Shown here in pieces: positions 14,301-39,845 of a stretch of 47,203 bases of DNA (position 1 is its first letter; every line of letters starts with the position of its first letter). The position numbers and the translations under genes are program-made. The stretch is from Octopus bimaculoides. Lineage: Eukaryota. The stretch is from the NCBI RefSeq assembly GCF_001194135.2, contig NC_068986.1, forward strand, positions 68,828,182-68,875,384, written 5' to 3'. The notes under the pieces were generated by a model that was given only the letters and a program-made list of their open reading frames with translations, was not told where the DNA came from and did no database searches.

Positions 14301-14762
14301 NNNNNNNNNNNNNNNNNNNNNNNNNNNNNNNNNNNNNNNNNNNNNNNNNNNNNNNNNNNNNNNNNNNNNNNNNNNNNNNNNNNNNNNNNNNNNNNNGGAA
14401 CGTTAGCTGACTACTGTTGGATGTTATACAGGGATGAACCTGAGACAAAACACCATAGAAAGTCCAAATCCCAAAGATTTTAAGATGTTATGCATTCGAG
14501 TGTATTCTAACTTATTTGTACACAATAAATTTTAATTTTGTACAATAAAAAGCCATGAAATTATTATATATTGTATTCATTATACTTTATATAGACATGC
14601 TTTACGTATCCTATACGTTAAAACAGCAGGTATCATTAACATGAAAATGTGACCTGATAGAGGAAATTGGACTTCAGATTCGTAATCAGCATCAAAAATT
14701 AACCCAGAAAAGTCAAACAGCAACTCAGATGATTACAAAAAGTTTCATTTTGTTGACCAGTG
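11314..14762 (+). mobile_element. Chapaev3-like (CMC superfamily) DNA transposon, disrupted by an LTR and two gaps
   Basis: Perfect 12-bp TIRs CACTGGTCAACA / TGTTGACCAGTG; 3-bp flanks TTA/GTA. Transposase pieces: MSRHCKNSPDIFCYVCG (ATG 11511), DSSKRSLKAVLLHNGN..WKICGDLKVV, LADYCWMLYRD (stop 14483). Family name is from recalled motifs. Confidence 0.7.
12558..13412 (-). mobile_element. LTR inserted antisense into the Chapaev3-like transposase
   Basis: Minus strand starts TGTAGTG at 13412 and carries CCAATCACAGCCCTTAATAAGG. Shares about 180 bp with 1-178. Transposase homology resumes at 13413 (GATTCATCT = DSS). Confidence 0.6.
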
Positions 14763-16052: not shown

Positions 16053-16253
16053 ATGAATTTCATGTATATTGTTATATTTTTCGTGCAACCTCCCATGTTT
16101 CTGTCAGCGGAGAAAACTTTAAGGGCCGCAGTTTTTGAACCGACAATATTAAGTAGAACACCTATGGGAAACGTATCACGCGACAATGCTATTGCTCAAA
16201 TGAAAATTGTCCTGAAAGGATACGCTGATGTTGCTACAAAAGCTAGTAAAGAG
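16053..16253 (+). CDS. VNN1-like: Vanin/biotinidase-family (pantetheinase-like) protein, coding exon 1
   Basis: MNFMYIVIFFVQPPMFLSA is signal-peptide-like. LRAAVFEP..VSRDNAIAQMKIVL..ATKASKE resembles the vanin N-terminus (YIAAVYEH..VSREEAL..M). Phase-0 donor GAG|GTTTGT at 16253/16254. Start could instead be ATG 16062. Confidence 0.8.
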
Positions 16254-16859
16254 GTTTGTAAATATCTTACAGAAAATATTTTACAACTGTTGTCCTTTGA
16301 TATGAATCAAACATTAATACATTTTGATAATTAGCTTCATTTTTGAATACATTATATTATAATATATTACCAAACAAGTACAACTTACATGTAAAATGCG
16401 TGCGTGTGTGCGTGTTCACGCGCGCTTGCATATATAGATATTGATATAGAAAGATGGGTCGAAGCTGATATTGTGTAACAACAAATAACAACTAACGACA
16501 TGTTTGTATGTATGTATGTACGTATGTATGTGTGTGTGTGTGTGTAAGTATGTGAGTACATGTATGTGTATGTGCGTGTTTACTACTGTCGCCCAACATG
16601 CTAGAAACAGCAGCTACGTTCCCCATATATAAATTTCATTTTCAAAAATCCATGTAAATACTGAATACACACTATTTTAAAGAAGACCTGAAGATGTGAT
16701 GGCCATGGACGGAATGCCTTTGATTATTGGTCTGATTGATAACTAGTGACAGATTCGGCTAACAATACAAAAAAATCTATCGCTCACCAGTTAGAAAGAT
16801 CAGTAAATCTGCTGTTGTTGTTTTTATGGTTGTTTTTTTTTTATTACTATTTGTCGTCA

Positions 16860-17190
16860 GGTCATCACTGTTCTTAACAAGTCGGACAATACGGTCAGTG
16901 GAAGTTCTATGGTAGCAATATGGATCTTTTCTGTTAGGCTGTCACGCACAAAATGACAGTTTCCAAATCCTGTTTTCTGGGATTTTCCCTCATTGACCCT
17001 AGTTGGAAATCCTCCTGTATCAGGACTGCATCGTCCATGTTATCACATACTTTGTATACTAAGTATAACTATATCGCATTTGACAGTCTTTTCCATTTCT
17101 TTCTCTCCATCCTTTATGTAAATTCCCACACAAATTGTTGTCTATATTTGTGATACTCCCTCATCTCTGCCCCTGTGGTTAATGAAAGAA
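16860..17190 (+). mobile_element. Non-LTR retrotransposon 3' end (second copy at about 44990-45335)
   Basis: Both copies share CCCTAGTTG..AGGACTGCATC..CATACTTT and the tail GCCCCTGTGG..AATGAAAGAA followed by a simple repeat. Confidence 0.5.
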
Positions 17191-17191
17191 T

Positions 17192-17292
17192 TTCTTCTTC
17201 TTCTTCTTCTCCTTCCCCTCCTCCTCCTCCTTCTTCTTCTTCTTCTTCTTCTTCTTCTTCTTCTTCTTCTTCTTCTTCTTCTTCTTCTTCTT
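17192..17292. repeat. (TTC)n/(TCC)n microsatellite
   Basis: Read directly from the sequence. Confidence 0.95.
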
Positions 17293-17324
17293 TTGTTCAG
17301 ATTTGTGTCAGGCCAAATCACAAC

Positions 17325-18095
17325 TGATGTCATATTCCTGGTTAGGTAACTGCAGGAGAAATATCAAGCCAAAAATAAAATCCCTGTACCTAGCTTTTGT
17401 CAACATGGAGAAAGCCTTTGATAGAGTCCCCTGATCCCTTATCTGGTGCTCAATGCAAAAGCTAGGAATTGATGAGTGGTTGGTGAGAGCTGTACAAGCC
17501 ATGTACAGGGATGTTGTCAGTAAGGTGAAGGTTAGCAACAAGTATAGCAAAGAATTCAGGGTGCAAGTAGGGGTTCATCAAGGATCAGTCCTCAGCCCCC
17601 TCTTGTTCATCATAGTTTTCCAGGCAATAACAGACGAATTTAAGATAGGCTGCACTTGGGAACTCCTCTATGCTGATGACCCTGTTCTATAACCAAATCA
17701 GTTTGTTCCAGAACTAGAGAAGAAATTCCAGGCATAAAAGCAAGGTCTAGAATCAAAGGGCCTTAGAGTTAATCTAGCAAAAAACAAAGTCTTAGTAAGT
17801 AGGAGGCATTAATAAGTGACCAAGATCTTTGGCAATATATCGTGCTTGAGAAAACCTGTGAAGCTGAGTGAGACCATAGTCATGGCCAATGCCGGTGTTT
17901 CATAAGTGGCATCTGTGCCAGTGGCCCGTAAAGACCACCCACTACAGTCATGGAGTGGTTGGTGTTAGGAAGGGTATCCAGCTGTAGAAACCATGCCAAA
18001 TCAGACTGGAACCTGGTGCAGCTCTCCAGTTTTCAGTTAAACTGTCCAAATCATGCCAACATGGAAAAAGGACATTAAATGATGATGATGATGAT
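17325..18095 (+). mobile_element. RTE-clade LINE fragment (RT domain plus 3' tail)
   Basis: LYLAFVNMEKAFDRVP, GVHQGSVLSPLLF, ELLYADD. The 3' tail ends in (GAT)n. Confidence 0.85.
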
Positions 18096-18108
18096 ATTGA
18101 AGAAAAAA

Positions 18109-18581
18109 TTTTATCGTCTCTAATTGTGACTGAGAGTTCCGATGCACCTATATTGCAAGAAATAAGAGTTAAAAACTCTTAGAGCTGTAAGAAGTGTGCA
18201 ATATATATATATATACACTGACAGAGGAGATAACCGTCCCATTAGCGTCTCTAGGATCATTAGACTAGACTAGTCCTACCTATAAGTTGTAGGCTCGTCA
18301 GTAGTGACTCCTCAAATGCTCGATGGTTTGGTTAAGTCCAGCTGTCAGTATATATATATTATTACCATAAAAATTCATGGCTGATTTAGTGAAATGCTAG
18401 TGTGTACATAAAATTTTAATATAAGCAACTAGTCACTATTGACTGAGAGGCAAAGTAGTTTAGTCAAGTGATCCTAGAGACACTCGTGGTTATCTCCCCT
18501 GTCAGTGTATTATATGTTGTGTTCTTATTTCTTGTAATATATGTGCTTCAGCATCCTTAGTCACAATTAGTGATGATAAAT
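18109..18581. mobile_element. MITE with ~150-bp imperfect TIRs
   Basis: CTAATTGTGACT..CAAGAAATAAGA..TACACTGACAG..GGAGATAACC..GTCTCTAGGATCA is mirrored at 18455-18581. Confidence 0.75.
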
Positions 18582-18632
18582 TATTTTCGTTTATGTATTA
18601 TATTGCGTCTAGCTGTTTATATATATATATTT

Positions 18633-19156
18633 ATCATCATCATCGTTTAACGTCCGCTTTCCATGCTAGCATGGGTTGGACGATTTGACTGAGGACTGGT
18701 GAAACCGGATGGCAACACCAGGCTCCAATCTAATTTGGCAGAGTTTCTACAGCTGGATGCCCTTCCTAACGCCAACCACTCAGAGAGTGTAGTGGGTGCT
18801 TTTACGTGTCACCCGCACGAAGGCCAGTCAGGCAGTACTGGCAACAGCCACGCTCAAAATGGTACATTTTATGTGCCACCCGCACAAGAGCCAGTCCAGG
18901 GGCACTGGCAACGATCTTGCTCGAAAATCCTACGAAGGTCAGTCAGGCGGTACTGGCAACAGTAACGCTCAAAATGGTGTATTTTATGTGCCACTCGCAC
19001 AAGAGCCAGTCCAGGGGCACTGGCAACGATCTCGCTCGAAAATCCTACGAAGGCCAGTCAGGCGGTACTGGCAACGGTAACGTTCAAAATGGTGTATTTT
19101 ATGTGCCACCCGCACAAGAGCCAGTCCAGGGGCAGTACTGGCAATGGCCACGCTCG
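18633..19156 (-). mobile_element. RTE-type 3' tail element with an internal 115-bp tandem array
   Basis: (ATC)n followed by GTTTAACGTCCGCTTTCCATGCTAGCATGGG. Units start at 18821, 18936 and 19051. Confidence 0.85.
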
Positions 19157-19166
19157 TATATATATA

Positions 19167-20432
19167 TTGGGTCATCCCATAAATATTGCGTTTATTTCAA
19201 TTGCATGAACTAAAAGGTGGAGGGGGACAGGATAAGCTACCTGCATCTATTTGCTATAAAAGCATGTAGTAATTTAACCTTGTGCTTATTCTTAGTGCAA
19301 GTTCTGAAGAGTGTAGTTCAATTTTAACAGTTATTTTTTCAAAGCTATAATGGAAGTGATAAAGGAGCATATTTGGCATATTTTGTTTTATGAGTTCAAT
19401 AAAGGCAACACTCCAATGGAAAGTGCGAGGAATATTAATGCAGCATATGGGGATCGGACAATAAGCATAAGCCAATGTCAACGGTGGTTCCAGAAATTCT
19501 GAGCTGGAAACTACAGCCTAGAAGACAAGCTTTGTCCTAGAAGATTTGTAGAGCTCAATGAGTATGTCCTGCGAACCCTGGTGGAACAAAATTCCATTGT
19601 AACTGTTTAGGAACTAGCAGAGAAGCTTGGATTTGGTCATTCAACCATTCATCGACACTTGCATGCCATCAGAAAAGTCAGCAAATTGGATTAGTGGGTT
19701 CCTCACAAATTTTCCAAGTCTAATCGCGTGCAGAGAGTGAATATGTGCTTCTTTGCTGTCATGTCTCACAAATAAACTTTTTTTTGACCGAATAGTGACT
19801 GGTGACAAGAAATGGGTTCTCCATAAAAATATCAAGCACCGAAGACGGTGGATAGGGAAAGAAGAAACACTGGTACCCCAGGCTAAAGAAGGTCTTCACC
19901 CATGTAAGGTGTTGTTATCTATTTGGTGGGATATGAAAGGTTTAGTTCACTTTGAACATTTAAGCCCAAACCAAATGATAACAAAGGAGATCTACTCTAA
20001 GCAGCTTGAGTGGCTTAAGTCAGCACTAGAAGAAAAACGATCACCTTTGGTTTCAAGATGAAAGGTGTTGTTCCATCAGGATAATGCTCGGCCACATACG
20101 AGGATGACATTCCAATGGCTGGAGCAGTTTGGATGGTAAACGATGCCCCACTCACCATTTTCGCTGGACATTGCCCCATCTGATTATCATTTATTCCATA
20201 GTCTTCAAAATCATTTGGACGGAAAAAATATGAATTCTGTAGACAAGGTCAGAACAGTACTAGAAGAATATATTTTGTTACGGACGAGTGAATTTTGCAA
20301 GTCTTCCAGATAGATGGAAGAGCATTGTAGAAAATGAAGGAAAGTATATTTTAGATTAAAAGAGAACTTTGTTTATCTTAATTTTGAAAAACAGAAGTAT
20401 AAAAATATCGCATTATCTATAGGATGACCCAA
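19167..20432 (+). mobile_element. Full-length degenerate mariner (DD34D) element
   Basis: TIRs TTGGGTCATCC / GGATGACCCAA with TA on both sides; 1266 bp. Motifs IVTGDKKWV, KVLLSIWWD, HQDNARPH, DIAPSDYHLF, with stops and frameshifts. Confidence 0.9.
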
Positions 20433-20554
20433 TATATACAAATATATACAAGTATGTTTATATAAATATATATGCACATGTATACATATATATTTGTATA
20501 TATGTGCATATGAACATATAAATGTGTACATATATGCATACATATACATGTGTG

Positions 20555-20848
20555 TGTGTGTTTAACCTTGGGTTGACCAAAAACCTGTGAGTTTGGTAGA
20601 TGGAAACAGAAAGAAACCCATCATATATGTCTGTATATCCATATGTGTTTCTCTGTATTTGTGTCTGTCTTTCACCACTGCTTGACAGAGATGGTTTGTT
20701 TATTTTCCCATAACTTAGCAGTTTGGCAAGAGAGACCAACAGAATGAGTACCTGACTTTAAAAAAATAACATACTGAAGTTGGTTTCTTCAACTAAGCCC
20801 TTCCCTGTGGTGCCCCAGTATAGCAGCAGTCCAATAACTGAAACAAGT
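20555..20848 (+). mobile_element. SINE family A, 3' portion; tail split by the foldback element
   Basis: GAGTTTGGTAGATGGAAAC..GCCCCAG..ACTGAAACAAGT; the AAAAGA tail resumes after 22258. Confidence 0.65.
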
Positions 20849-22254
20849 TGTAGCAAGTCATAAAAGGTGGCAATATGACATAATAGTTATTTGCCCAAAC
20901 AAGCATAATTGTTGGTAATTCCATTGGTTAAAATGACTGCCCATATTTGAGTTCTAAACTTTCGTCAAAGAGAATTCTTTCACAAAATACGGTTCTTAGA
21001 ATTCAGGTATGAGCAGTTATAAAAACCCTGATTTTGGTAAAATTAATCAGTGTTCGTAGGATGTTACTAAACCCCACGACATTCACTCCTTGAGATATTG
21101 GCTATTTTTTATGCCATGTCTATGATAAAAATCCAACAACACTTATTTGAATTGTTGTGAACTCACTCTAGTTAGTATGAAAGATTAGCTAGTGTGAATT
21201 TTAAGTCGTAATTCTCTACTACAAAATGACTTTATTTTCCAATTGTTCTATAAATGCTAAATGTACATAAATAAACTAATGTAGTAATTATTTTCTCTTT
21301 CTTCATGTTCTTCAACTTGTAAATGAAATTTATTTCTGCAATTAGGAAACTGTGTATTTTTTTATAGTGGTTAAAAGAGCACGAATTTATTTATCTTCAA
21401 CATACATGCATGCATAAATTGTCCATTAGCGTTTCAGAGTATATATTTCTCACTATGGTGTTTATGTAGCTGGAGTCAGGATTTATGTATAATGATAACA
21501 CTTATAAGTAAGTTATAAGTGACATATTTATCAATATATATTCCTACTTCAAAAGTAAAATATATTTATTATCTATTTCCAAATAGGAAACATATACAAG
21601 TAGTGTTACACAAACAGTAACAAAACGCGACTATAAAAAGTGGTGACCCCCCAATGTGATCTCATAGATAAACCACCGCATCATAAAAGTATAGACACTT
21701 GTGAAAAATATATAAAATTTTTAATAGAAAATAGATGAGTTTTATTACACAAAATTTTATTAACAGAAATATTTGATATTAAAAGTTGAAGGAAAAAGAA
21801 TGTTAAGAAAGAGAAAATAATTACTACATTATTTATGTACATTTAGCATTTATAGTACAATTGGAAAGTAAAGTCATTTTGTCGTAGAGAATTACGACTT
21901 AAAATTCACTCTAGCTAATCTTTCATACTAACTACTAGAGTTCGCAACAATTCAGATAAGTCTTGTTGGATTTTTATCATAGACATGGCATAAAAAAATA
22001 GTCAATATCTCAAGGAGTGAGTGTTGTGGAGTTTAGTAACATCCTATGATCACTGAGTAATTTCCCCCAAATCAGGGTTTTTATAACTGCTCATATCCGA
22101 ATTCTAAGAACCGTATTTTGTGAAAGAATTCTCTTTGACAAAAGTTTAGAATTCAAATATGGGCAGTAATTTTAACCAATGGAATTACCAACAATTATGC
22201 TTGTTCAGGCAAACAACCATTATGTCAGATTGTCGCCTTTTATGACTTGCTACA
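20849..22254. mobile_element. Non-autonomous foldback element with ~470-bp TIRs (Ginger-like termini)
   Basis: TGTAGCAAGTCATAAAAGG / CCTTTTATGACTTGCTACA ends; exact 4-bp TSD AAGT (20845-20848, 22255-22258). Arms about 20849-21320 and 21783-22254. Confidence 0.85.
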
Positions 22255-22559
22255 AAGTAAAAGATTAGAAAGTGAAAAAGGTATATATACATACACACAT
22301 GCATGTGCGCACACACACACACATGTATATTGCCTTCCCAGCAAGCAATCAGGCCTTGCATGACAAGCGGGGGGGGGGGGGGCACTTCCCACTGTACACA
22401 CGTATGTATATATAGATATATAAGTGTGTATACATACATATAACAACCTGGGTATGTCTTTCACTAGAAGAACTGGAACCAGACACCACCTGTTGAAGGA
22501 GCATTTTGTTTACAAAAATTACACAACAGATCAAGATATGAACTTAAGAACAGATAACT

Positions 22560-24400
22560 TGGTTAGAGTGAGATGTTACCAAAGCTTATCTTAACTTTAT
22601 TGAATTTCCTGAGAGGCTCAGCTATATCTCTGCTTCTTTTTATATCACTTGTTGGCTAAGCTGTTGCTTCACAAGTCATTGTTTGGCACTGATCATGCAA
22701 ACCCATGATCAAAGGAATAATGATTCTCTCATTTGTATGTCTACAACTACATTGTCTAACGTCTCCTTTCATTTGTAAGTCTGTAAATAGTGATTTGCTT
22801 GAAATCTGACTGCCGTTTCTAGCATGTTGTATGACTATGCAGAAGCTCTTTTGTTCAATAAGGTACTTAGATTCACAATCAACAACAAAAAACATTTTCT
22901 GAGTACAGAGAAAAAAATATCCTTAATTATGATATCTGGCTTCAGCATTAGTTAGAAAGAGGTCTGTATTTTGACTTGAACCTTGTATATAACTGGTATG
23001 AATTGCTGCAATCCTGGAGGAATGACAAATACTTTCAGCCAGATGTATTTAACTTACTGTTAATTTTATCCATTCACATAATTAATTCCTGCTGGAATTG
23101 ACTTGGCTTTTTATCTGTCTGCAGTTGCTAAAATAAGTTCCAGCGATATACTGGCATTGATTTTATTGAATTTACTTTATCCTTGAGCCAAGTTAAAAAG
23201 AACAATTTTCTTTTGTGAGTGCATATATTACAATGTGTAACATGATTTTTGTCCTTGGGTAGCAACTGTTATTTCCTATTTGCTTAACCACAGAAAGTAT
23301 GAAAAATAGCTAATATTTCCTTCAAACTTTGCTTTTCTTACATTTATTCAAACCCCAAAGAATCCCTCTCAGCACATGACTCTAATGCTTCCCCATTGCT
23401 CTTGCTCTTGATCAGAGATGCATATATTGGTAGCCACGAAGAGATATATTCAGGTGGTTAAGGCCAAGCAACTGACAAACAAATCTGTAGTTTTGAGCAG
23501 ATTATTTGCTATAATGATATTTCTGCTTCAGCAGCTCAGTGCTGAATCTGTCTGAAATATAATGGAAAACATTGATGTCCAGGTTACAAAAGCTAAGCTT
23601 GAAGGGAGTAGTAATCATTCCCTTTGGTTTCTAGATAGATGCAAATAGGAAATAATACTTACTGACTAAAGACAAAAAAAAAAAATTGAAATTTTGTTTC
23701 AGTGTTATCTTTCTTGTACTAGGCCACAGTTGATTTAAGTTATTGTAAGTATAAAATACAGATGTGAAATCTAAAAGGATTAAGCATTTAAAAAAATTAC
23801 TTGTTTTAATGTTTGTGTCACTAACCTCTCTATGATGATCTAGCAAATAAATTGAGAGGTTATTTACTTTATTTGATAGACAAAATATAGGTCTACTGAA
23901 TGCTTGAGTAGTTTCCTTGAAAGACTTCATTCAAAGTAATGGATTTCACTAAGCATAGGCATTAATAAGTTTGCAAAAATTATACATTCAGTTCAATGGT
24001 CTCAATGCTAGTGATTTAAATTTAACATCAATTTATATAAAAGTTGCTTTTGAAATATTCATATTATCTGTCTGTATATATATATATATGTGTGTGTGTA
24101 TTATATTATGTGTTAACATGGGCCTCCTAACGACAAAGTAAACTTAATTTAATCAAGATATCTTTGGCCTGAAGAGTAGTCTGTAGTATACACCTTGCTT
24201 GGATATTTGCCACTTCCAAGGTTCTGCTTGCTATGAAACATATGTAGCCTGGATTTTATCTAGTCCAACCATGAAATATAAAATAATTTTCAGCTTAGCA
24301 TACTTCGATATGGGGAAAATTCACAACCTTCCACCCCAATAAACCACTAATGTTCCTGAAAGTTGTTTTCTATGTTTTCTATGGATTACTTGAAGCTCAC
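22560..24400 (-). mobile_element. Heavily decayed non-LTR retrotransposon (possibly R4/Dong-like)
   Basis: Only faint minus-strand RT-like remnants (CLILLDFTS, GLNKCK) and a Cys-rich C-terminal piece; many stops. Confidence 0.3.
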
Positions 24401-24429
24401 TTTTGATCTACACCTTGATCCTTAGAGCT

Positions 24430-24463
<34 letters not shown>

Positions 24464-25019
24464 NNNNNNNNNNNNNNNNNNNNNNNNNNNNNNNNNNNNN
24501 NNNNNNNNNNNNNNNNNNNNNNNNNNNNNNNNNNNNNNNNNNNNNNNNNNNNNNNNNNNNNNNNNNNNNNNNNNNNNNNNNNNNNNNNNNNNNNNNNNNN
24601 NNNNNNNNNNNNNNNNNNNNNNNNNNNNNNNNNNNNNNNNNNNNNNNNNNNNNNNNNNNNNNNNNNNNNNNNNNNNNNNNNNNNNNNNNNNNNNNNNNNN
24701 NNNNNNNNNNNNNNNNNNNNNNNNNNNNNNNNNNNNNNNNNNNNNNNNNNNNNNNNNNNNNNNNNNNNNNNNNNNNNNNNNNNNNNNNNNNNNNNNNNNN
24801 NNNNNNNNNNNNNNNNNNNNNNNNNNNNNNNNNNNNNNNNNNNNNNNNNNNNNNNNNNNNNNNNNNNNNNNNNNNTGTTCTTTTCCCTTAATCTATATAT
24901 TTATATATATTTAATACTGTGAAACTTAATTTAATTTTTATTTTTATAAATTGATTTTAATTGAGTTTTTACCTGTAATTTTGGATTTTTATCCTTAATA
25001 TTACTATTATATATATATA

Positions 25020-25200
25020 TAGGGAGAATTCACAAAAAAACAAAAGACAAAGACAGGTGGTGTAGACAACAAACAGATATATTAGTATAACGCTTGGGAA
25101 GTGAAAAAGTCTTTAACGTTTCGAGCCTACGCTCTTCCACAGAAAGGAACACACAAAGAAACAAGGAGAGAAAATAAAGAATGTGTAGTGGCTAGCGATC
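25020..25200 (-). mobile_element. Short Penelope-derived (pLTR-like) element with minimal hammerhead-like fold
   Basis: Homologous to 464-612 and flanked by (TA)n on both sides. Minus strand reads CTTT-CTGTGGA-AGAGC-GTAG-GCTC-GAAAC-GTT-AAAG. Confidence 0.55.
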
Positions 25201-25744
25201 TGTCATATATATATCAAGGTGTTGGGCCTCATGGAGGCAATGACAATGAACTGAGATGTCTGGTGATATGAGGTTCTTGAGAAGCTCTCTCCTACTTCAG
25301 AGAGCCTTTCCTCATTTTCATGCACTATGCTTATGCTTATCTCTTGCTCCCAAATCCTGTCCTCACTGCCCTGCCCACAGTATCATAGCTATCCTGTTGT
25401 GCCCCCATCCTCTATATACCCAGGTTTCACCAGTCACTGCATTCACCCCTGTTGTTTGCATTCATATGAATTCACTATTCATGCATGCACCCTTACTAAT
25501 ACCCTACCATCTCATTTATATTCTGATCCCTGTACCTTGAGGGTATGCCCTGGCACATCAACACCATCTCTCCCTTGCTCTTTCTCATCCCACTTTCTCT
25601 CATTCTTGATCATTCCTTTGCTTTCTCTCTCTGACTGGATAACTATGTATCTCCTCTACAGCAAGACACCTATTCCTGGCCCTCTGTCACATTGTAATCT
25701 CTCATCACCTGGCACAAGGCCACCTCCACCAATACTCCATCTCT

Positions 25745-26060
25745 CAAAGGATCTTTGTCCTGTGAGTTACTTGGTGACCCAGCCAGTGCTGATGCCATGT
25801 AAAAAGCATCCAGTCCACACAATAAAGTGGTTGGCATTTGGAAGGGTGCTTACTTGTTAAAACCCATGCCAAAACAGACCTCGCCAGTACTGGTACCATG
25901 TAAAAAGCACTCAATCCACTCTGTAAGGTGGTTGGCATTCAGCTGTAAAAACCATGACAAAACAGACAGTGAAACCTGGTGCAGTCTTCTGGCTAGCCAA
26001 CTCCTGTCAAACTGTCCAACTCATGCCAGCATGGAAAATGGACATTAAATAATGATGATA
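25745..26060 (+). mobile_element. RTE-type 3' tail element
   Basis: GCCAGTGCTG..CCATGTAAAAAGCA repeats, GTGGTTGGC..CAGCTGTAAAAAC, CATGCCAGCATGGAAAATGGACATTAAAT and an (ATG)n tail. Confidence 0.75.
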
Positions 26061-26203
26061 ATGTGTGTGTGTGTGTGTGCGTGTGTNNNNNNNNNNAATA
26101 ATGATGATAATGTGTGTGTGTGTGTGTGCGTGTGTGTGTGTGTGTGTATGTGTACATACAGTGTTTTTGCTATTAACAAAGTATATTATATTTATATTTC
26201 CAG

Positions 26204-27571
26204 GGTGTGAATATTTTGGTATTTCCTGAAAATGGCCTTATTGCACATTTGATGAATTATTCTCGTACTGATATTGAGAACTTTCTTGACATTATACCAC
26301 AGCCTAACAAAGTGAGACCATGGATTCCATGTGATGAACCTGATCTCTATCCAAGAACACAAATTCAGGAAGCTATTAGCTGCATTGCCAAAGAGAACAA
26401 GATTTATCTTGTAGTTAATGTTGGAGACATGCAACTCTGCAATCACACAGAAGATTCAAACTGTCCTTCTGATGGACGTTACCAATACAACACTAATGTT
26501 GTTTATTCATCAGAGGGTGCTCTTGTTTCTAGATATCACAAGAAACATCTTTCTGATGAGCCTTATTACAACGTTCCCAAGACTGCAGAATATGCAGTGT
26601 TTGATACTCCATTTGGTCGTTTTGCAAGCATTGTATCTTATGATATATTCTTCAATGACACGCTAAATAATTTAATAGAAAAACATCAAGTTTCAAATAT
26701 TCTTTTTCCAAATCTATGGTTACATGTTCCTCCTTTCTTTTTATCATCTTTATTCCACAATTCAATTGCCAAAGCTTTCAAGATAAACCTTATTTCTGCA
26801 AATGTCAAAATAGATATGTTCCCAGATATTATATCTGGTGGAAGTGGTATTTATACACCTTCAGAAAGTCTTTATAGCTATAAACCCTTTAATTCTGTTC
26901 CTTCAGACGGATATCTTCAGTTAGAAATTAAAAATATTGAAGAGTCAGAAAGAAAATTTCTTTGGCCTCTAAAACGTGAAGTACCCATATCAGACAACTC
27001 TGTTGTTAAAACGGCACTTATGACAAATGTTTTCCCTGTATCTGCCGTGATACTTCAGAATGATTCAGGCATTGTTAGTGTGTGTAATTATAAGGTATGT
27101 TGTTCTCTTGAGTATGAATTCATGTCTAATAGAACTTTAAAATTTAAAATCAACTATATTTTAGCAATAAGTAACAAGAAAGATGTAGATCTGACTAATC
27201 CAGAAGGTAAAGAAATGCAATCATGTCTTTTATGTCCAATTTATGATGAAAAAATATCATGTTTGATGACTTTGCCAGCTGATATTCCCAAAGGAGATGT
27301 TAGCTTTCGCAAATTAAAAATGACAGCTCATAATTTTAATACTCCTTATTTATTTCCCCACATTGCGACTTTTAATTCAAAAACTTACGATATCAATACA
27401 TCTTGGAAACATGACAGAGGAAAAATAGAAAATACGAAACCAATTGAAAAAGTTTTTACTGCTATAATATTTGGAAGATTGTATCCTATTACCTCATCAG
27501 CTACATCTACAGTATTTCCAGTCACTTTTGTAATCTTGTTAAATTTAATATCAAAGGAACTACTTGTTTAG
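26204..27571 (+). CDS. VNN1-like: Vanin/biotinidase-family protein, coding exon 2 (nitrilase domain, base domain, GPI-type tail); catalytic Cys replaced by Ser
   Basis: Acceptor TTTCCAG|GGT, phase 0, then an uninterrupted 455 codons. Motifs: ILVFPENG (Glu), GRYQYNTNVVY, RYHKKHL (Lys), DTPFGRFASIVSYDIFF, VCNYKVCCSLEY, FGRLY, hydrophobic C-terminus. Spliced product about 522 aa; intron 16254-26203. Confidence 0.92.
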   Translation, partial: GVNILVFPENGLIAHLMNYSRTDIENFLDIIPQPNKVRPWIPCDEPDLYPRTQIQEAISCIAKENKIYLVVNVGDMQLCNHTEDSNCPSDGRYQYNTNVVYSSEGALVSRYHKKHLSDEPYYNVPKTAEYAVFDTPFGRFASIVSYDIFFNDTLNNLIEKHQVSNILFPNLWLHVPPFFLSSLFHNSIAKAFKINLISANVKIDMFPDIISGGSGIYTPSESLYSYKPFNSVPSDGYLQLEIKNIEESERKFLWPLKREVPISDNSVVKTALMTNVFPVSAVILQNDSGIVSVCNYKVCCSLEYEFMSNRTLKFKINYILAISNKKDVDLTNPEGKEMQSCLLCPIYDEKISCLMTLPADIPKGDVSFRKLKMTAHNFNTPYLFPHIATFNSKTYDINTSWKHDRGKIENTKPIEKVFTAIIFGRLYPITSSATSTVFPVTFVILLNLISKELLV

Positions 27572-32118: not shown

Positions 32119-32482
32119 CTAAGGCCAGATACATTAACTGTTGCTTGCTACATATATGTATTGAGAGATGATATATCATTAAAGACATACCATCACTTCC
32201 AACACCAACCACAATGTTGAGTTAATAGTAATTCAAATATTACTTCAAAGCTTATATGATCTACAAAGTTCCAAAAGACCATCATATGAAATTTTTCTTT
32301 TTAGTTTAATTACAAAAATATTTCATTTTGTATCACAGAATGCTTCAATGACGACATTTAAGATGATGTCCATTTGACAGTTGTCTGTATGTGACAAGAT
32401 TGCATTTAACAGTCTGTAATGTAGTCTTGCCTAAAGAAAATACAATAAACCTTCAGTTAGGCAAATTCTTTACTAGATGCAT

Positions 32483-32704
32483 TTAGTAATGTTCATATTT
32501 CTTTCGAAGAGCCAAGATCTTCAGTCTGTGAGAAGGATCCAAAATTGGTTTCAACACTTGCTCAGTGTTTTCTATCCGACATCGAAACCTCTCTGAATCA
32601 ATATGAATTTGTACCCATTCACCTTTACGGGCAGCTTGGTAGGCAAAACTCCATACAAGCATAAAATGCTTGGTTTCTAACTTCTCATCAGCAGCAAAAC
32701 GAAC
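32483..32704 (-). CDS. PPP1R15: PPP1R15 (GADD34/CReP-like PP1 regulatory subunit), terminal coding exon
   Basis: Acceptor TTTTTTTTTCTCCAAAG|GTT. Manual translation: VRFAADEKLETKHFMLVWSFAYQAARKGEWVQIHIDSERFRCRIENTEQVLKPILDPSHRLKILALRKKYEHY*. Matches the RVxF plus RxGxW..DxxRFxxRI PP1/eIF2alpha module. Absent from the supplied ORF track. Confidence 0.92.
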   Translation of the reverse strand, partial: VRFAADEKLETKHFMLVWSFAYQAARKGEWVQIHIDSERFRCRIENTEQVLKPILDPSHRLKILALRKKYEHY

Positions 32705-33679
32705 CTTTGGAGAAAAAAAAAGTAATAAGAAAATTAAAGATCAATTTCAGGGAAAGCAAACTAACACCATACTATTTCAATACTATTACCAGCAAACTGC
32801 TGAAAGTATTTTTCAGCTTAATTCCCAGATGAATACATCAGAGTATGTGAACAATCAACATTTACCTTTCTGGCATATATGTATTTAAAAATATAGACTG
32901 ATTTACTTAGCAGTGATCCTGATAGCTTCATAGTCCACTGTGCTTATAGGTGGAATAAAAAAAAACACCTGAAAACAAAATTCAGCACTAGAAAGAGCAC
33001 ACAGCCATAGAACAAAAATATTTTGTTCAACCTATATCATTATAAGAAAAACAAAGATTGTTTCTCACAGGCGAAACAGTTAACTGAATAAAGTGCACCT
33101 AATGCCAGGCAACTGCATTATAATAAACTGTTGGTATGCCTAACAACAACCATGCAACACAATGGTCTGCACTTGGTCGAAACCCAATGATGCATAACAT
33201 ACAAGCCCAACAAAAGGCAGCTGGAGCAGAGATTAAAATCAACCATGCAATACATGGAGATACTGGAGGCTTCCTTGTATCTGGAGTAGTAGCTATCAAA
33301 GTAAGGCATCTTTGTATTGTATTTAGACATTACTATCATACAAATTAATTTTCAATTATAAATTCTTTTGTATTTATATTTTAGTATTAGTAATAAAAAA
33401 CATTTGGACTTAAACTTTATACAAATAAATGCGGTAACGTTCACTTTCATTTCACCAATGATTCCTGCCTTAAATTGCTTCATTTTCACACCTTCAAGAG
33501 AAAGATCGCCTAATTATACTGACGAGACTACTACAGCAACATCCACTAAAGCACAGGAAAGAAAAAAATTACAAATTCTCACAACAGATTTTAAACTGTG
33601 TGCATGAGAAAATGTATTTCTATTTGTGAATCTTTTATATCACAAATAGAAATACATCGGCATCTTAGACAAGTGAGTT

Positions 33680-33830
33680 CCACTATAGCCCCGGGCCGAT
33701 CTAAGCCTTGCAAGTGGATTTAATAGACGGATACTGAAAGAAGCCCACCATTTGTCTGTCCCCCACCAGTGGCGGTTTGTTTACGTCCCTGCAATTTAGC
33801 GGTTCGATCGAAGACACTGATAAAATAGTA
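33680..33830 (+). mobile_element. SINE family A fragment
   Basis: CTATAGCCCCGGGCCGA..AAGCCTTG..AGTGGATTT..GACGGA.ACTGAAAGAAGCCC. Confidence 0.65.
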
Positions 33831-35178
33831 CTGAAATGCGTGGAGTTCTAGTTTAAACATCCTCTATAACCTCTTACATCTTTTTGGAATTTTCATAAAG
33901 TTCTAGCGAATTTTAGGCCATCTTATTTTTGTTTTCAAGTGAAAGATGTCTGTACCTGTATGTGTGTTATGTATACGTGCATACATAAATACATAGACCT
34001 TTTTTGTATGTGTGAGTGAGTGAGTGCCACCTAGATATACATGCGAACACACATACACACTCTCCACAAAAATGCTTTACGGAATCTCACATTTTCGGCT
34101 ATGGAGATTTCAATTCTGAAATTTTTTTTTCACAAATCGCAACTTCAAATTTCTACCCCCACCCACCCCTTCTTCATTTTCTACTTTTCCGGAATTTTTT
34201 TGCGAAATACATAGAAAAATACGGGGATTCTGATTCTGAAAATAAATTGTAAAATTTCAACTTTTCGGACCCTACCACCCTAAACTCCTCTCCTCCCGAT
34301 TCTACGGCCTTGGCCATCAAGCAGGCTATATCCACATGCTAGAAATAACAGCCAAATCTCACAAAACTGCGATAACATAATGAAAGAAATATGTAATCTA
34401 TTCACTTTTCTGCAAAGATTTTTTTCAGAGTATTTTTTTTTGAANNNNNNNNNNNNNNNNNNNNNNNNNNNNNNNNNNNNNNNNNNNNNNNNNNNNNNNN
34501 NNNNNNNNNNNNNNNNNNNNNNNNNNNNNNNNNNNNNNNNNNNNNNNNNNNNNNNNNNNNNNNNNNNNNNNNNNNNNNNNNNNNNNNNNNNNNNNNNNNN
34601 NNNNNNNNNNNNNNNNNNNNNNNNNNNNNNNNNNNNNNNNNNNNNNNNNNNNNNNNNNNNNNNNNNNNNNNNNNNNNNNNNNNNNNNNNNNNNNNNNNNN
34701 NNNNNNNNNNNNNNNNNNNNNNNNNNNNNNNNNNNNNNNNNNNNNNNNNNNNNNNNNNNNNNNNNNNNNNNNNNNNNNNNNNNNNNNNNNNNNNNNNNNN
34801 NNNNNNNNNNNNNNNNNNNNNNNNNNNNNNNNNNNNNNNNNNNNNNNNNNNNNNNNNNNNNNNNNNNNNNNNNNNNNNNNNNNNNNNNNNNNNNNNNNNN
34901 NNNNNNNNNNNNNNNNNNNNNNNNNNNNNNNNNNNNNNNNNNNNNNNNNNNNNNNNNNNNNNNNNNNNNNNNNNNNNNNNNNNNNNNNNNNNNNNNNNNN
35001 NNNNNNNNNNNNNNNNNNNNNNNNNNNNNNNNNNNNNNNNNNNNNNNNNNNNNNNNNNNNNNNNNNNNNNNNNNNNNNNNNNNNNNNNNNNNNNNNNNNN
35101 NNNNNNNNNNNNNNNNNNNNNNNNNNNNNNNNNNNNNNNNNNNNNNNNNNNNNNNNNNNNNNNNNNNNNNNCATGCCA

Positions 35179-36033
35179 ACTATTCAAAACAATGTCAGAT
35201 TGACAAAGAAACCAGGAAGGTATTGGGTGGTCGTGAGTTGTGCAAAAAAACACCAGCTAAATCGTCCTTAAATCACGCGAGTCGTGACTAGTCGATCCTA
35301 CGACTACCTAGCGCGTCATGCGCAAAACATGTATGAGGGTTTTTTTCTAAACAAAGTAAATATTTTTTTTAAAACTAAGATGATCTTTCGATACAATGCC
35401 CAGAAATGTCATCCCTTGTTCAATGGTATCAGTACATGAAGGGCATTACAAGTAATTATCTTTTGCGTAACCTTTACCAAATTGGTGGACTTGAGCGCAA
35501 ATACAACAGAGGATGGGATAGAGAGGATAAAAATAGGTTTTTAGAACGTTGTAGCTCTAAAACTCTTCAGCCACTTATTAAAAAATTTATCAAACCAGGG
35601 ACGACTATATATTCTGATTGTTGGAGTGCGTACAATGGGATTACTGAAATAGATGTGACACCAAAATACACCCTGGAAGAACGTAAAACGACGTTTTAGG
35701 AGTAAGGTGTGGAAGATTTAAAAAAAAAAAAATTTAATTTGTGTTTTATTTACTTTGTTTTAAAAAAGTCATACATGTTTTGCGCATACGCGCAAGATAG
35801 TCGTTGTAGGATACACAACTAGCTAGCACGGATGCGCAAGTGAGCGCACCGGGACCACTCGTCTTGAATAGTAGATCAGTAACACCGTACGTATTCTTTA
35901 CTTTCGCCCATTAATGTGTTTACGGGGAGAAAACTATTCAAAACAATATATGTCAGATTGACAAAGAAACCAGGAAAGTATTGGGCGGTCGTGAATTGTG
36001 CAAAAAACACCAGCTAAATCGTCCTTAAATCAC
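35179..36033. repeat. ~100-bp direct repeat pair (35179-35276 and 35932-36033) bracketing the Merlin remnant
   Basis: ACTATTCAAAACAAT..GTCAGATTGACAAAGAAACCAGGAA..CACCAGCTAAATCGTCCTTAAATCAC occurs twice. Confidence 0.9.
35277..35856 (+). mobile_element. Internally deleted Merlin (IS1595/ISXO2-like) transposon
   Basis: ORF fragment RCSSKTLQPLIKKFIKPGTTIYSDCWSAYNGI. Inverted ends GCGCAAAACATGTATGA / TCATACATGTTTTGCGC; right end finishes GCGCACCGGGACC. Confidence 0.75.
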
Positions 36034-36447
36034 ACATACCCCACCCCCAAAAACGTATGAATTCCTGTGTGTAGAATACAGATTCGTAAAAAATTTCAGA
36101 AAATAAAATTATGAGGGGTTATATCGGGTGCTTAAACTAGAATTCCGCCAAAAATCCTATTCTTCCGTATTTAAAATAAATTTATAAAACGTTCTTTATA
36201 AAAGAGAAGTCAGAAAGAGTACTTATTTCGAGATAATTTTAAGCAATACAAAACCATTCTTGTAAGCAGCGTATAGAACCTAAAATTTTTCTGTTATTCT
36301 GAAAAGAACAGTAAAAGTGGAACATTGAAGCAGTTACTCAACTCATAAAATGGGCGCGGTCTATTTTACAACATATCTACTGCGCACATGTTTAGGCGGA
36401 AGGACCCAAAATTGTTCAGTTGTAATGGTTCTTTACGAGGTAGAGAC

Positions 36448-36981
36448 GGACTATATGTAATCTGAACCTTTCCCCACCTTATTTATTAATTTTTTTAACG
36501 GAATCCCACGTTTTAGGCTATGGAGACTCCGATTCTGNNNNNNNNNNNNNNNNNNNNNNNNNNNNNNNNNNNNNNNNNNNNNNNNNNNNNNNNNNNNNNN
36601 NNNNNNNNNNNNNNNNNNNNNNNNNNNNNNNNNNNNNNNNNNNNNNNNNNNNNNNNNNNNNNNNNNNNNNNNNNNNNNNNNNNNNNNNNNNNNNNNNNNN
36701 NNNNNNNNNNNNNNNNNNNNNNNNNNNNNNNNNNNNNNNNNNNNNNNNNNNNNNNNNNNNNNNNNNNNNNNNNNNNNNNNNNNNNNNNNNNNNNNNNNNN
36801 NNNNNNNNNNNNNNNNNNNNNNNNNNNNNNNNNNNNNNNNNNNNNNNNNNNNNNNNNNNNNNNNNNNNNNNNNNNNNNNNNNTTTTTTCAGAATCGGAAT
36901 CTCCATAGCCTAAAACGTGGGATTCCGTAAAAAAAAAAAAAATAATAATAAGTGAGGAAAGGTTCAGATTACATATAGTCC
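36448..36981. mobile_element. MITE/foldback with ~95-bp visible TIRs spanning a gap
   Basis: GGACTATATGTAATCTGAACCTTTCC..GGAATCCCACGTTTTAGGCTATGGAG is mirrored after the gap. Related sequence at about 34075-34130. Confidence 0.75.
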
Positions 36982-38623
36982 ATCTGGAGTTTTCGATAAA
37001 ATTTTGGCATATCTACGTCAAGTGTGTTCAACAACTTTGTTACCTCATAACTTCCGGAAAAATGAAGATTTTTCTACAAATATTTTTCGTGGGGGAAGAA
37101 ATAGAGAGGAGGTCCGATTTACTCACACGAGTGTCGACTATTTCCTTATAGCTTTCAGAAAGATGGGTAATTTTAAACGAAATTTCCCACAAATACCATT
37201 CAGATAGTGTACATTACAATTACATATGAATTCAACAAGAAAATAATACATAAAAGAAATTGTCACACATATTACACATATGTACAAAAGCTTGAAATTG
37301 TTATGCGCGTCAGTAGGTGTACACCTACGAATTTTTACCCACCCCTGGGAATTCAATTTCGATATGATCATAAATCTACACCATTTGAAATGCATTTGTA
37401 GAAAATACCATTTAGAGATATTCATCTTTCTCAAAGTTATGAGGAAACAAAATTCGGAGAAGGCCGGGGGAGAGGGGGCACTTGTGTAGGTATGCCTAAT
37501 TTAATACAAATTATTTTGTAATGCCGGTATTAAATTGAAAAATTTCGGACTCTCATATATTAGCAAGTTACTGTTAAGTTTAATTTCCAAGGGATAACAA
37601 AACCGAAAAATGTATTTTTGAAAATTTTCAGGATAATGCAGTTTCCAAGACGAGAAGCACAAAAAATATGGAGAAAGAGGAAGATACATATGAAAGAGAG
37701 GAAGAATAGCTTGAGAGAAATATGCTCTAAACCGGAACTTAATTATATTAAAGCCCCCCAACTATTTTTATATATTTTAAAAAAACAACCCTTTCTTTCA
37801 ATGTTCACACAATAGAAGAGAAACATTTTAAATAGAGAGAGTGCTCGATTAATATAGTCAAAGTGTAATATATGGTAGCTGCGGAGTAATTCATTTAGAC
37901 TGTGTACTGTGGTTCAACTGCGCAGGAGTATCTTTAGAACGTGTCAAATGCGCGCCCTACTTTACCAAGAATTAAAAATGTCGAATCAATTCACCGGCGC
38001 CATATTTACTTTTCGATTATTTCTTTGGGGGTTTTCTTTTTGTTGTCAACACGAAAAATTGGAATTCTTTAAAAAAAAAAAAAAAAAAACCGGTCTTGTT
38101 TCGGCTGCCGGTCTTTGAGCTCGGACTATGTACTTTGAAAAGAGATATTTCCATTAATGTTAAATAGTATTAATACAATCCTCATGAGAGAGAGAGATTG
38201 GGGGGGGGGAGAGCAAAATCAACAGTTCGACTCTCAATCCGATAAAAAGACAAAAAAATCAGTCGAAGAGGACATGCAAAGTGATACATCCGTTTGAGGG
38301 CCACGAAATATACGCTTTGTGATAAGCTTAAATAGGTTGAACAAACGTTTAACATGTTCTACCAGGAGTGAATAAATAACTGCAATTAAAATAATTCATG
38401 CGAAAACCAGTTTAAAATTAAATGGCAAATGTAACAAGTGCTGATTGAACCATTTGCTTAGATAGACATAAATCAATTAGATTTATTTCCTATAATTTTT
38501 GGAAAGAGGGAAGTCAAATATACAACATATGGCATTCAATAGTTTACATAAACCAAATGAAAAAAGAAATTACAATATATGTTCATGTGAAGTTTTTAAG
38601 GAAGTAATAATAGAAATTCAAAC

Positions 38624-39526
38624 CTTAGAAGTTTTATGGTGTACGTTCGTGTCCGTATAGATTTTATTCCATCTGTCGTTGGCTTTTCCTATGATACTGG
38701 GAATGGAGTCTGTATTTTCAGTTTTTGTATTTTGAGTATTTTCAAACAGTTCATTGAAAGAAAAGCAAGGGGTATTAGAAAACAAGATATCATCATCGTA
38801 ATCTTCATCATAGTCATCACTATCACACTCATCATCGCTTTCCACTAACTGAAAAACGGTTTTCCAAAATGGGACGTCTTTGGTACATGGTAAATCGTTA
38901 CAATTTGTGTCTGAATTAAAATCCCAATTTTCGTCACCACTAGCATCCTCAAAAGAAAAATGTCCATCATCATCGCTATCCTGCCCATCATGAGCAGAGC
39001 TGTGCAGATCAGTAAAAGAGTCTAAAGTAGTGGAGTTCATTGAACTCTTGCTGCTCGGACTGAATAACAAGTCGTACTCGCTTTTTGGGGAGTATGCTTC
39101 TTCTTCATCTGAAGGGTTTTCTAAGGAGTTAGATTCGCTAATAAGACTATCGTATTCAATAGCTAAGTCGAATGGGGTATCAGCATCATCACTTACAGGG
39201 GTCAACGCGATGGTGTCGGGAATAGAACCGACCGCGTTTTTTGCATGCTGTCGGTTCATTTCAATATTTTTTGTATTTAATATACGGCTTATGTTACTGT
39301 GAGTACAGTCGCCACAGTTCAGCTGCATAAACAGCATATGTCTTTGTAAATGCACGACACTTAACTTGGCAATAAAGTCTATCAGAGAATCGCCGTTCGA
39401 CGATTTTGGAGCGCCGTAAGTAAAGCCGTCTTCCCTTGGTGTCGTTAAGTGGCACACTTTTGGACTCGCCATCTCATCACATGCTTCGTGAGAACTAAAT
39501 GGATTTATTAAAGCAGGTGGTGCCAT
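38624..39526 (-). CDS. PPP1R15: PPP1R15, main coding exon (acidic, Ser-rich, PEST-like region)
   Basis: ATG at 39526 in strong context (ACAATGG); 301 codons open; Asp/Glu/Ser-rich; ANDRW near the end. Phase-0 donor AAG|GTTTGA joins ..TSK to VRF, giving KVRF. Total about 374 aa; intron 32705-38623. Confidence 0.85.
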
Positions 39527-39584
39527 TGTGATGCGAAATCCAAGTATATATATAATAGTCAAATGCGATTAGCTGTTTGTTTTT

Positions 39585-39845
39585 TCAGAAATTGTTTTGA
39601 ATGCGGTGTTGGTGATGGTCAACAAATGTAGCAGAATTGTTTTTGTAGAGTTTGTGACAGGGTGGAAAGGAATATTGAAGCCAATATCTATCGAGTTTAT
39701 TCCAGTATTTATCAGTGTAATTTACCTTTGTCATGAAATATTGGGAACCATCATTTTCAGTACAGCTGCAACGTTTAAAATCATCGGCGAACAAAGTAGA
39801 CGAAAAATCAAGATCGGAGCATAGTGTGGAACATAATACATCCAT
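39585..39845 (-). other. 86-codon upstream ORF in the PPP1R15 leader
   Basis: ATG in GAAATGG context; stop 58 nt before the main ATG; out of frame with the main ORF. Confidence 0.55.

Follow-up and report, generated by a model that had tools for sequence, protein, structure and literature searches.

A serine in place of the catalytic cysteine of a vanin/biotinidase paralogue is kept in three Octopus species

Introduction

What becomes of a nitrilase-superfamily enzyme when its nucleophilic thiol is replaced by a hydroxyl and the gene is kept? The question is raised by a vanin/biotinidase paralogue encoded in a 47-kb window of Octopus bimaculoides DNA (the whole stretch analysed here, contig C6:68828182-68875384), in which a serine, Ser212, takes the position of the catalytic cysteine. 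The catalytic Cys is regarded as obligatory in this superfamily, and Cys-to-Ser mutants made in the laboratory serve as low-reactivity or inactive forms. A Ser variant kept by selection in three Octopus species is a natural test of whether a thiol amidase becomes a serine enzyme or its fold is reused as a binder. A sequence-only reading of this DNA had pointed out the substitution, and here we followed it up using alignment, structure prediction, comparison of loci and codon models.

Serine at this position was already known. Francis, Christianson and Haddock (2017, PeerJ 5:e3633, PMC5541922) describe cephalopod proteins with Ser for the catalytic Cys that had several independent origins, and in the text available to us they report Ser in every Group 3 protein, with Tyr mostly following the Ser where other members have Phe. 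The protein studied here is in their data as obirnaseq.12337.1, an identical 522-amino-acid (aa) sequence, and their tree pairs it with obirnaseq.93053.2, its Cys-bearing paralogue, with a support of 100 and Vampyroteuthis as sister. Both the Ser212 protein and the Ser-Tyr pattern are thus prior knowledge (Francis et al. 2017). The available text and legends of that paper do not single out the octopus protein, mention no Gly variant and contain no analysis of accompanying loop substitutions; the study was made without the O. sinensis, O. vulgaris and Argonauta genomes and hence without orthology, synteny or the ratio of nonsynonymous to synonymous substitution rates (dN/dS, omega). What is added here is fixation across species, synteny, the analysis of selection, a Gly variant and parallel loop changes.

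Results

Gene structure and active site

The gene lies on the forward strand in two exons, 16053-16253 and 26204-27571, and encodes a 522-aa protein; exon 2 codes for the remainder of the nitrilase-type domain and for the Vanin_C 'base' domain. The product is 100% identical to XP_014768680.1, 'pantetheinase [Octopus bimaculoides]', and together with the canonical splice sites this bears out the intact spliced open reading frame (ORF) of about 522 aa described earlier. The database name is an automated annotation, and a pantetheinase or biotinidase activity is putative. The coding sequence (CDS) is arranged as follows.

16053..16253, + strand: CDS exon 1 (67 codons, residues 1-67), ATG at 16053, donor GT at 16254
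16254..26203, + strand: single phase-0 intron of 9,950 bp with GT...AG boundaries, acceptor AG 26202-26203
26204..27571, + strand: CDS exon 2 (455 codons, residues 68-522, plus stop), coding to 27568, TAG 27569-27571

The active site was located by phmmer alignment to human vanin-1 (4CYF), which covered the full length (E 1.5e-56, 29% identity). In this alignment 'FGRFASIVSYD' stands against 'FGSFGIFTCFD' of vanin-1, and Ser212 is opposite the nucleophile Cys of 'FTCFD'. The vanin-1 (VNN1) triad is E79/K178/C211 as given in the text of PMC5541922, in agreement with the residues given by the sequence-only reading, and its octopus numbering also proved exact (Glu76 in VFPENG, Lys180 in RYHKK, Ser212 with codon TCT at 26636-26638). 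Glu76, Lys180, Glu186 and Asp214 are all kept, at positions that are invariant or at least 90% conserved across the family. Glu186, conserved in at least 90% of a 39-sequence family alignment, would correspond to the second catalytic Glu of the superfamily. No further Cys is found among residues 195-225, which excludes another Cys at the nucleophile position, an alternative raised beforehand. The residues of the site are listed below.

26228..26230, + strand: Glu76 (GAA), catalytic Glu, kept; opposite the Glu of vanin-1 'VTPED' and invariant in the 39-sequence alignment
26540..26542, + strand: Lys180 (AAG), catalytic Lys, kept; opposite vanin-1 K178 in 'RYHKQ' and conserved in at least 90% of the 39-sequence alignment
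26552..26560, + strand: Ser184-Asp185-Glu186; Phe-Tyr (TTT TAT) changed to Ser-Asp (TCT GAT) on the stem of the Ser clade, Glu186 kept
26636..26641, + strand: Ser212 (TCT) and Tyr213 (TAT); ancestral Cys-Phe (TGT TTT) from the vanin-1 alignment and the codon alignment
26720..26725, + strand: Leu240-His241; Ser-clade-specific change from Phe-Asp in the 'NLWFD' loop after the next beta-strand (232-236)

Pfam matched both domains of the family. The CN_hydrolase match (PF00795; 36.2 bits against a cutoff of 23.2, E 5.3e-9) ends at about residue 221, just beyond the nucleophile motif, and the Vanin_C match (PF19018) scored 67.2 bits against a cutoff of 23.4 (E 2e-18). An AlphaFold2 model built from the 39-sequence alignment had a mean predicted local distance difference test score (pLDDT) of 86.7, above 90 around the active site, and a predicted template modelling score (pTM) of 0.86. 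Ser212 was placed at the N-terminus of helix 212-216, following strand 205-209 (pLDDT >90). Compared with vanin-1 structures the model gave template modelling (TM) scores of 0.88-0.89 across both domains, and nitrilase-fold enzymes were also matched. The predicted fold is an intact two-domain vanin type. The assignment to the vanin/biotinidase paralogues made by the sequence-only reading therefore holds by Pfam and by structural comparison, and the Ser212 protein is a member of this family by descent and fold without the canonical thiol nucleophile.

The serine is real and fixed in three species

Orthologues of 522 aa with 'IVSYD' were found in a 90%-identity cluster for O. sinensis (XP_029637940.1, P0044) and O. 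vulgaris (CAI9723734.1, P0043). Their CDSs, taken from the genomic loci, share the two-exon phase-0 structure, with GT-AG introns and no disruption of the frame. Collinearity of the three loci extends over the intron and both flanks (79-92% identity, introns 84-92%), which identifies the genes as true orthologues. The nucleophile codon is TCT in all three independent assemblies; Tyr213 is encoded by TAT in O. bimaculoides and by TAC in the two other species, a synonymous difference that keeps the Tyr. Whether Ser is fixed in an orthologous clade had been posed as a question by the sequence-only reading, and the answer is Ser in three Octopus species at collinear loci.

Two older O. bimaculoides models, XP_014768680.1 and A0A0L8HWZ3, likewise have the serine, and obirnaseq.12337.1 in the supplement of PMC5541922 is the identical protein, spliced and full length. 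We took the latter as transcript-level support for the Ser, the splicing and expression, an RNA sequencing (RNA-seq) origin being probable from what it is called and from the statement in that paper that data of Albertin et al. 2015 were used. The window contains several runs of N, one of them 108 bp upstream of exon 2, as might be expected if the codon were an assembly or sequencing error, but TCT in three independent assemblies and Ser in older gene models and the RNA-seq transcript leave almost no probability for this explanation. The assembly error that had been named beforehand is thus excluded by the same TCT in three species and by the transcript. The older model A0A0L8HWZ3 (UniProt, 468 aa) was rejected as a description of the gene: its start 'MLYDYAEALLFNK' comes from an intronic ORF at 22803-22955 (+ strand) and not from exon 1 at 16053, leaving it without a signal peptide, and it is contradicted by the spliced transcript and the orthologues.

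Family members and the origin of the Ser clade

Three family loci were found in the O. bimaculoides genome, on contigs C6 (the Ser212 gene), C30 and C3. The C30 paralogue (XP_014777355.1, P0003) is 76% identical to the Ser212 protein and keeps 'IVCFD'. The C3 gene (G000:C3:102307068-102308312) is the Group 3 gene Ocbimv22003864m; it is 30% identical to the Ser212 protein and reads 'KYRRKAL ... VVSSYD', an E-R-S arrangement with Arg for the catalytic Lys. Only one of the three genes (C30) therefore has the canonical Glu-Lys-Cys triad, and automated names such as 'pantetheinase' overstate knowledge for the two that do not. In O. sinensis the C30-type paralogue has two copies, inverted tail to tail at a distance of about 12 kb, on a different chromosome from the Ser orthologue. 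The Gly member of this pair, XP_029653108.1 (P0006), reads 'ITGYD', with codon GGT followed by Tyr. A single copy was seen at the O. bimaculoides C30 locus, where about 11 kb of the 50-kb region is N.

CM016887.1:9822146-9829263 and 9841038-9846853, opposite strands: loci of the O. sinensis pair, one Cys (P0005) and one Gly

In the maximum-likelihood protein tree the Ser clade was supported at 100/100 and the Cys clade at 100/98, and the two were sisters at 99/98. The Cys clade comprises a Logan-derived octopod sequence (P0004, run SRR11869391), the C30 copy and the O. sinensis pair. Further outward come the single Argonauta hians Cys gene, the Vampyroteuthis 'symplectin/biotinidase-like 2' and a decapodiform group. 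The stem of the Ser clade is twofold longer than that of the Cys clade (0.144 vs 0.070). From the text of Francis et al. 2017 and the tree we infer that the whole clade is their 'Group 2', the placement with Vampyroteuthis and decapodiform sequences being supported at 100/99 and 100/100. The protein does not belong to the symplectin clade, as the symplectin-like Chiroteuthis sequence fell outside the Ser/Cys clade. Across 215 sampled family members the nucleophile position is Cys in 186 and Ser in about 15, with a few Gly, Asn, Ala or Trp. Beyond cephalopods non-Cys variants were seen in Pecten, Mactra, a spider, a scorpion and the gastropod Gigantopelta, the Ser carriers including bivalve, spider and scorpion proteins.

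Selection on the Ser clade

Nei-Gojobori comparison of O. bimaculoides with O. sinensis gave an omega of 0.26 for the Ser copies (dN 0.035, dS 0.135) and 0.24 for the Cys copies (dN 0.062, dS 0.256). For the Ser copies the dS agrees with the 8-11% divergence of alignable intron segments. Branch models (GY94-F3x4, our own implementation) were fitted to eight sequences with four branch classes. Background omega was 0.20. The Ser-clade stem had an omega of 1.30, different from background (p=2e-5) and not from 1 (p=0.69). The Ser-clade crown returned to 0.31, which is not distinguished from background (p=0.066) and for which omega=1 was rejected (p=3.6e-7). The branch of the Gly copy had an omega of about 0.70 (p=5e-6 against background, p=0.20 against 1). 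With separate Cys classes the Cys stem was estimated at 0.22 and the Cys crown at 0.25; the Ser and Cys crowns did not differ (p=0.36) and the contrast between the Ser and Cys stems was marginal (p=0.066). These models suggest that the branch that lost the Cys underwent a burst of positive or relaxed selection and that ordinary constraint followed.

A key catalytic residue lost (Cys to Ser) in a gene under purifying selection (crown omega 0.31) is one mark of a pseudoenzyme, although the Ser may still serve as a nucleophile. A young pseudogene or dispensable, decaying duplicate would account for the lost nucleophile and for the stem omega of about 1.3. It could also draw on the Logan assemblies, in which a 240-aa fragment spanning the exon junction and Ser212 matched distant proteins only and no Ser-clade partial ORFs. 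Against this stand an intact 522-codon ORF with canonical splice sites in three species, a recorded spliced transcript and the crown omega, with omega=1 rejected. Because that constraint follows the stem burst, a gene in decay is excluded, together with the neutral dN/dS that the sequence-only reading had named as evidence for one, and we consider this explanation very improbable.

Substitutions that accompany the loss of the nucleophile

The changes specific to the Ser clade were counted over 276 alignment columns, all invariant in the three Cys copies and Argonauta. The Ser clade had 18 fixed differences in these columns, six of them in three loops that contain or adjoin catalytic residues: F184S and Y185D just ahead of Glu186, C212S and F213Y, and F240L and D241H. 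The Gly copy XP_029653108.1 differed at 20 of the same columns. Seven positions (90, 184, 185, 212, 213, 240 and 320) had changed in both, compared with 1.3 expected (hypergeometric P=7e-5), and F213Y and F240L were identical substitutions in the two. Since the same positions changed beside Gly, where there is no nucleophile, this comparison suggests that the accompanying changes came after the thiol had been lost and are not an adjustment to a Ser nucleophile. We considered whether gene conversion had produced the parallel changes of the Gly copy and rejected it, as the flanking clade-specific residues remain of the Cys-clade type.

Termini, base domain and glycosylation

By hydropathy the most hydrophobic stretches of the protein are residues 3-17 at the N-terminus and 499-522 at the C-terminus. 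In the model pLDDT was low at residues 498-505, followed by a terminal helix. The 522-aa protein has seven N-x-S/T sequons, and the cysteines of the base domain are kept. These termini and sequons fit a secreted, glycosylated protein with a putative signal peptide and a tail of the glycosylphosphatidylinositol (GPI) type.

16053-16109, + strand: hydrophobic signal-peptide-like stretch, residues 1-19, from hydropathy
27017..27484, + strand: Vanin_C (base) domain, residues 339-494, Pfam PF19018; beta-sandwich in the model
27491..27568, + strand: candidate GPI-attachment signal, Ser-Ser-Ala followed by a hydrophobic tail, from hydropathy and analogy with GPI-anchored vanin-1

Locus history and surrounding DNA

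The gene downstream of the Ser212 gene was used as a synteny marker and is not part of the enzyme. It is collinear with the neighbour on the downstream side of the single Cys gene of Argonauta hians (tblastx E 4e-66), and its position and orientation are conserved in O. sinensis, O. vulgaris and Argonauta hians. It had no match within about 20 kb on either side of the C30 copy, where about 11 kb is N, so that this absence is not absolute. Synteny with Argonauta at C6 and none at C30 indicates that the Ser copy has stayed at the ancestral locus and the Cys copy has been relocated. One exon of the neighbour (32483-32740) had a weak, sub-threshold Pfam match to a PP1c-binding region (PF10488, E 0.008), and its large acidic exon (38618-39568) had no Pfam match.

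32284..39791, - strand: downstream neighbour gene, synteny marker, from tblastx against Argonauta hians

The intron of the Ser copy is 10-13 kb across the three species and much shorter, about 2-5.6 kb, in the Cys paralogues and Argonauta. Two of the nine assembly gaps (24464-24875 and 26087-26096) fall within it in O. bimaculoides. The O. bimaculoides intron also contains the degenerate remnant of a mariner-type transposase at 19741-20061 (+ strand; Pfam Transposase_1, E 1.3e-20). A further intronic ORF at 20140-20313 (+ strand) has an apparent resemblance to the C-terminal part of mariner transposases. The gap 108 bp upstream of exon 2 is 10 bp long and lies in a (TG)n tract; no gap touches coding sequence.

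2436-3172, 8030-8219, 8889-8898, 11640-12557, 13592-14396, 24464-24875, 26087-26096, 34445-35171 and 36538-36882: assembly gaps (N runs)

Two repeats are shared with related loci. One unit of a satellite of about 185-190 bp is found at 2192-2379, adjoining the gap 2436-3172, and the same satellite forms long tandem arrays around the O. sinensis paralogue pair at 81-89% identity. An interspersed repeat of about 200 bp, resembling a short interspersed nuclear element, has five copies in both orientations (17907-18105, 18633-18863, 25884-26063, 42845-43043 and 44806-44974) and recurs at the O. sinensis and O. vulgaris loci.

Discussion

How the Ser copy may have arisen and what it may do

We propose that a single ancestral gene, Cys-bearing as it still is in Argonauta, was duplicated after the Argonauta split and before the split between O. 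bimaculoides and O. vulgaris/O. sinensis, which would have given Octopus a paralogue of its own in the cephalopod 'Group 2' clade. On C6, the copy left at the ancestral position would have passed through a brief phase of positive or relaxed selection, in which TGT to TCT replaced the thiol nucleophile and the loops were remodelled (F213Y, F184S, Y185D, F240L, D241H), while the relocated C30 copy would have kept the canonical Glu-Lys-Cys triad. Since then the Ser copy has been constrained by purifying selection no weaker than on the Cys copy, and it is transcribed and spliced. The data show the gene structure, the orthology, the fixation of Ser, the selection regime and the intact fold; the mechanism is our proposal. 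Its protein would be secreted or GPI-anchored and glycosylated, with a formed active-site pocket that keeps Glu76, Lys180, Glu186 and Asp214, and would bind a ligand without thiol amidohydrolase chemistry, hydrolase activity being supplied by the C30 copy.

We favour the reading that thiol-type catalysis has been lost or strongly attenuated in the Ser212 protein. That the protein has become a ligand-binding, non- or weakly-catalytic surface protein, a pseudoenzyme, we rate at about an even chance. This binder role is preferred because the same changes, Tyr213 among them, arose beside Gly, which is not a nucleophile, and because a canonical E-K-C paralogue (C30) remains to cover the hydrolase function. 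It is also preferred because a laboratory Cys-to-Ser mutant of a nitrilase-superfamily enzyme preserved its binding properties with strongly diminished reactivity (PMC4812014), similar Ser mutants being present in the PDB. The sequence-only reading had offered a binder or a rare Ser nucleophile; both possibilities stand, as sequence cannot separate them, and 'rare' does not, given the frequency of Ser in the sampled family.

Several points weigh against the binder. Purifying selection has preserved Glu76, Lys180, Glu186 and Asp214, whose conservation a fully dead site would not call for. The fixation of Ser in three species and in all of the older Group 3 argues that the hydroxyl is functionally needed, which fits a Ser hydrolase and a binder alike. 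Positive selection is not demonstrated, since the stem omega of 1.3 does not significantly exceed 1, and the contrast between the stems is marginal (p=0.066). The omega of the Gly copy, about 0.70, is not distinguishable from 1, and its parallel changes may simply reflect relaxed constraint at these shared sites. The signal peptide and the GPI anchor are read from hydropathy and analogy. In the literature we found no publication testing the activity of any natural Ser variant of the family.

The main competitor is a natural Ser-nucleophile amidohydrolase, in which a Glu-Lys-Ser triad would form the acyl-enzyme, aided by Tyr213 and the remodelled 184/185 and 240/241 loops, and which probably would have a substrate specificity or kinetics unlike those of the Cys paralogue. 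Ser-Lys-Glu nucleophile systems exist in other enzyme folds, and the four conserved residues, in a site under purifying selection, favour such an enzyme. The recurrence of Ser variants in bivalve, spider and scorpion paralogues also speaks for it. In the available text of PMC5541922 Ser followed by Tyr arose repeatedly and independently in cephalopods and all Group 3 members carry Ser; our third homologue search for Group 3 Ser-Tyr returned O. sinensis and Argonauta only, so that 'all' rests on that paper. Group 3, however, also has Arg for the catalytic Lys, and F213Y and F240L arose as well beside Gly in XP_029653108.1, where no nucleophile exists. We know of no natural Ser-nucleophile member of the nitrilase superfamily that has been characterised. 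Engineered Cys-to-Ser variants serve as low-reactivity or inactive forms (MtCPA C158S, Nesterenkonia amidase C145S), and Lnt C387S is among assayed active-site mutants. On this evidence we consider a Ser hydrolase possible, although it is the less probable role. A bolder form, in which Ser-Tyr and the remodelled loops after Lys180 and after strand 232-236 would constitute a working Glu-Lys-Ser centre, the first natural one in the nitrilase superfamily and with several cephalopod origins, is slightly less probable still. If true, it would have originated convergently in Octopus Group 2, in Group 3 and in a Dosidicus symplectin homologue, possibly also in other invertebrates, with the possible advantage of an extracellular enzyme insensitive to thiol oxidation.

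Two further explanations concern the base domain and the RNA. The base (Vanin_C) domain alone could carry it, for example in ligand or cell-surface recognition, with the loss of the nucleophile as a tolerated side effect. In symplectin the functional, chromophore-binding Cys390 is in the base domain according to the text of PMC5541922, the base domain of vanin-1 resembles a lectin-type domain with a proposed role in homing (PMC4834066), and the retained base-domain cysteines of the Ser212 protein point the same way. S184, D185, S212, Y213, L240 and H241 have, however, been fixed in all three species since the stem, so that the pocket is not drifting, and the crown omega, taken over the whole gene, equals that of the Cys copy; we regard this explanation as improbable. 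Cephalopods recode RNA extensively, and the sequence-only reading was right that A-to-I editing cannot turn TCT into TGT. Editing of the neighbouring Tyr213 codon (TAT to TGT) would instead give Ser-Cys, with a thiol one residue off. This codon is editable (TAT, and TAC in O. sinensis and O. vulgaris) and in the available text on cephalopod variants Ser is mostly followed by Tyr, but Tyr is what the published transcript encodes, and the RNA around the codon has no unusual fold (z = -0.47). A thiol displaced by one residue at the nucleophile elbow would point elsewhere, and the same Tyr follows Gly in XP_029653108.1. Such rescue by editing is very unlikely. Together these findings leave a ligand-binding protein with lost or attenuated thiol catalysis as our preferred reading, and they define a small, concrete set of residues for mutagenesis.

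Comparison with known systems

Human vanin-1 (PDB 4CYF, 4CYY, 7SLV) shares with the octopus protein the layout of nitrilase and base domains and the Glu and Lys of the triad, and differs in that its Cys211 is replaced by Ser212 and its Phe212 by Tyr213. In vanin-1 a buried interface residue, Glu249, is essential (PMC4834066). The corresponding octopus residue is Leu250, and this Glu is absent from the whole of cephalopod Group 2, including the Cys copies. The Glu249/Glu439 pair was considered as a marker of activity and set aside as uninformative, Glu249 being Leu in the Cys copies too.

Within cephalopods, the Group 3 proteins (Ocbimv22003864m and the O. sinensis and Argonauta 'VNN3-like' proteins) also have Ser-Tyr ('VVSSYD' / 'IVSSYD'). 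They are about 30% identical to the Ser212 protein and form an old clade common to decapodiforms, with an independently acquired Ser and the E-R-S arrangement. The O. sinensis protein XP_029653108.1 lost its nucleophile independently, as the second such case in the Octopus clade, and has changed in parallel at 184, 185, 213 and 240; it differs from the Ser212 protein in deriving from the C30-type Cys copy, in having Gly and not Ser, in its omega of about 0.70 and in being found in one species only. Symplectin, the photoprotein of Sthenoteuthis oualaniensis, has the same family and domain layout and is a precedent for a non-hydrolase role in cephalopods. It belongs, however, to a different cephalopod group and keeps the E-K-C triad, and nothing ties the octopus protein to light production; the available text of PMC5541922 reports no symplectin-group protein in octopodiforms.

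The closest chemical parallels are engineered. MtCPA C158S (5H8K/5H8L) and the Nesterenkonia amidase C145S (5NZ5) have the same single-atom swap at the same structural position as the octopus protein. These mutants are laboratory constructs without compensating changes.

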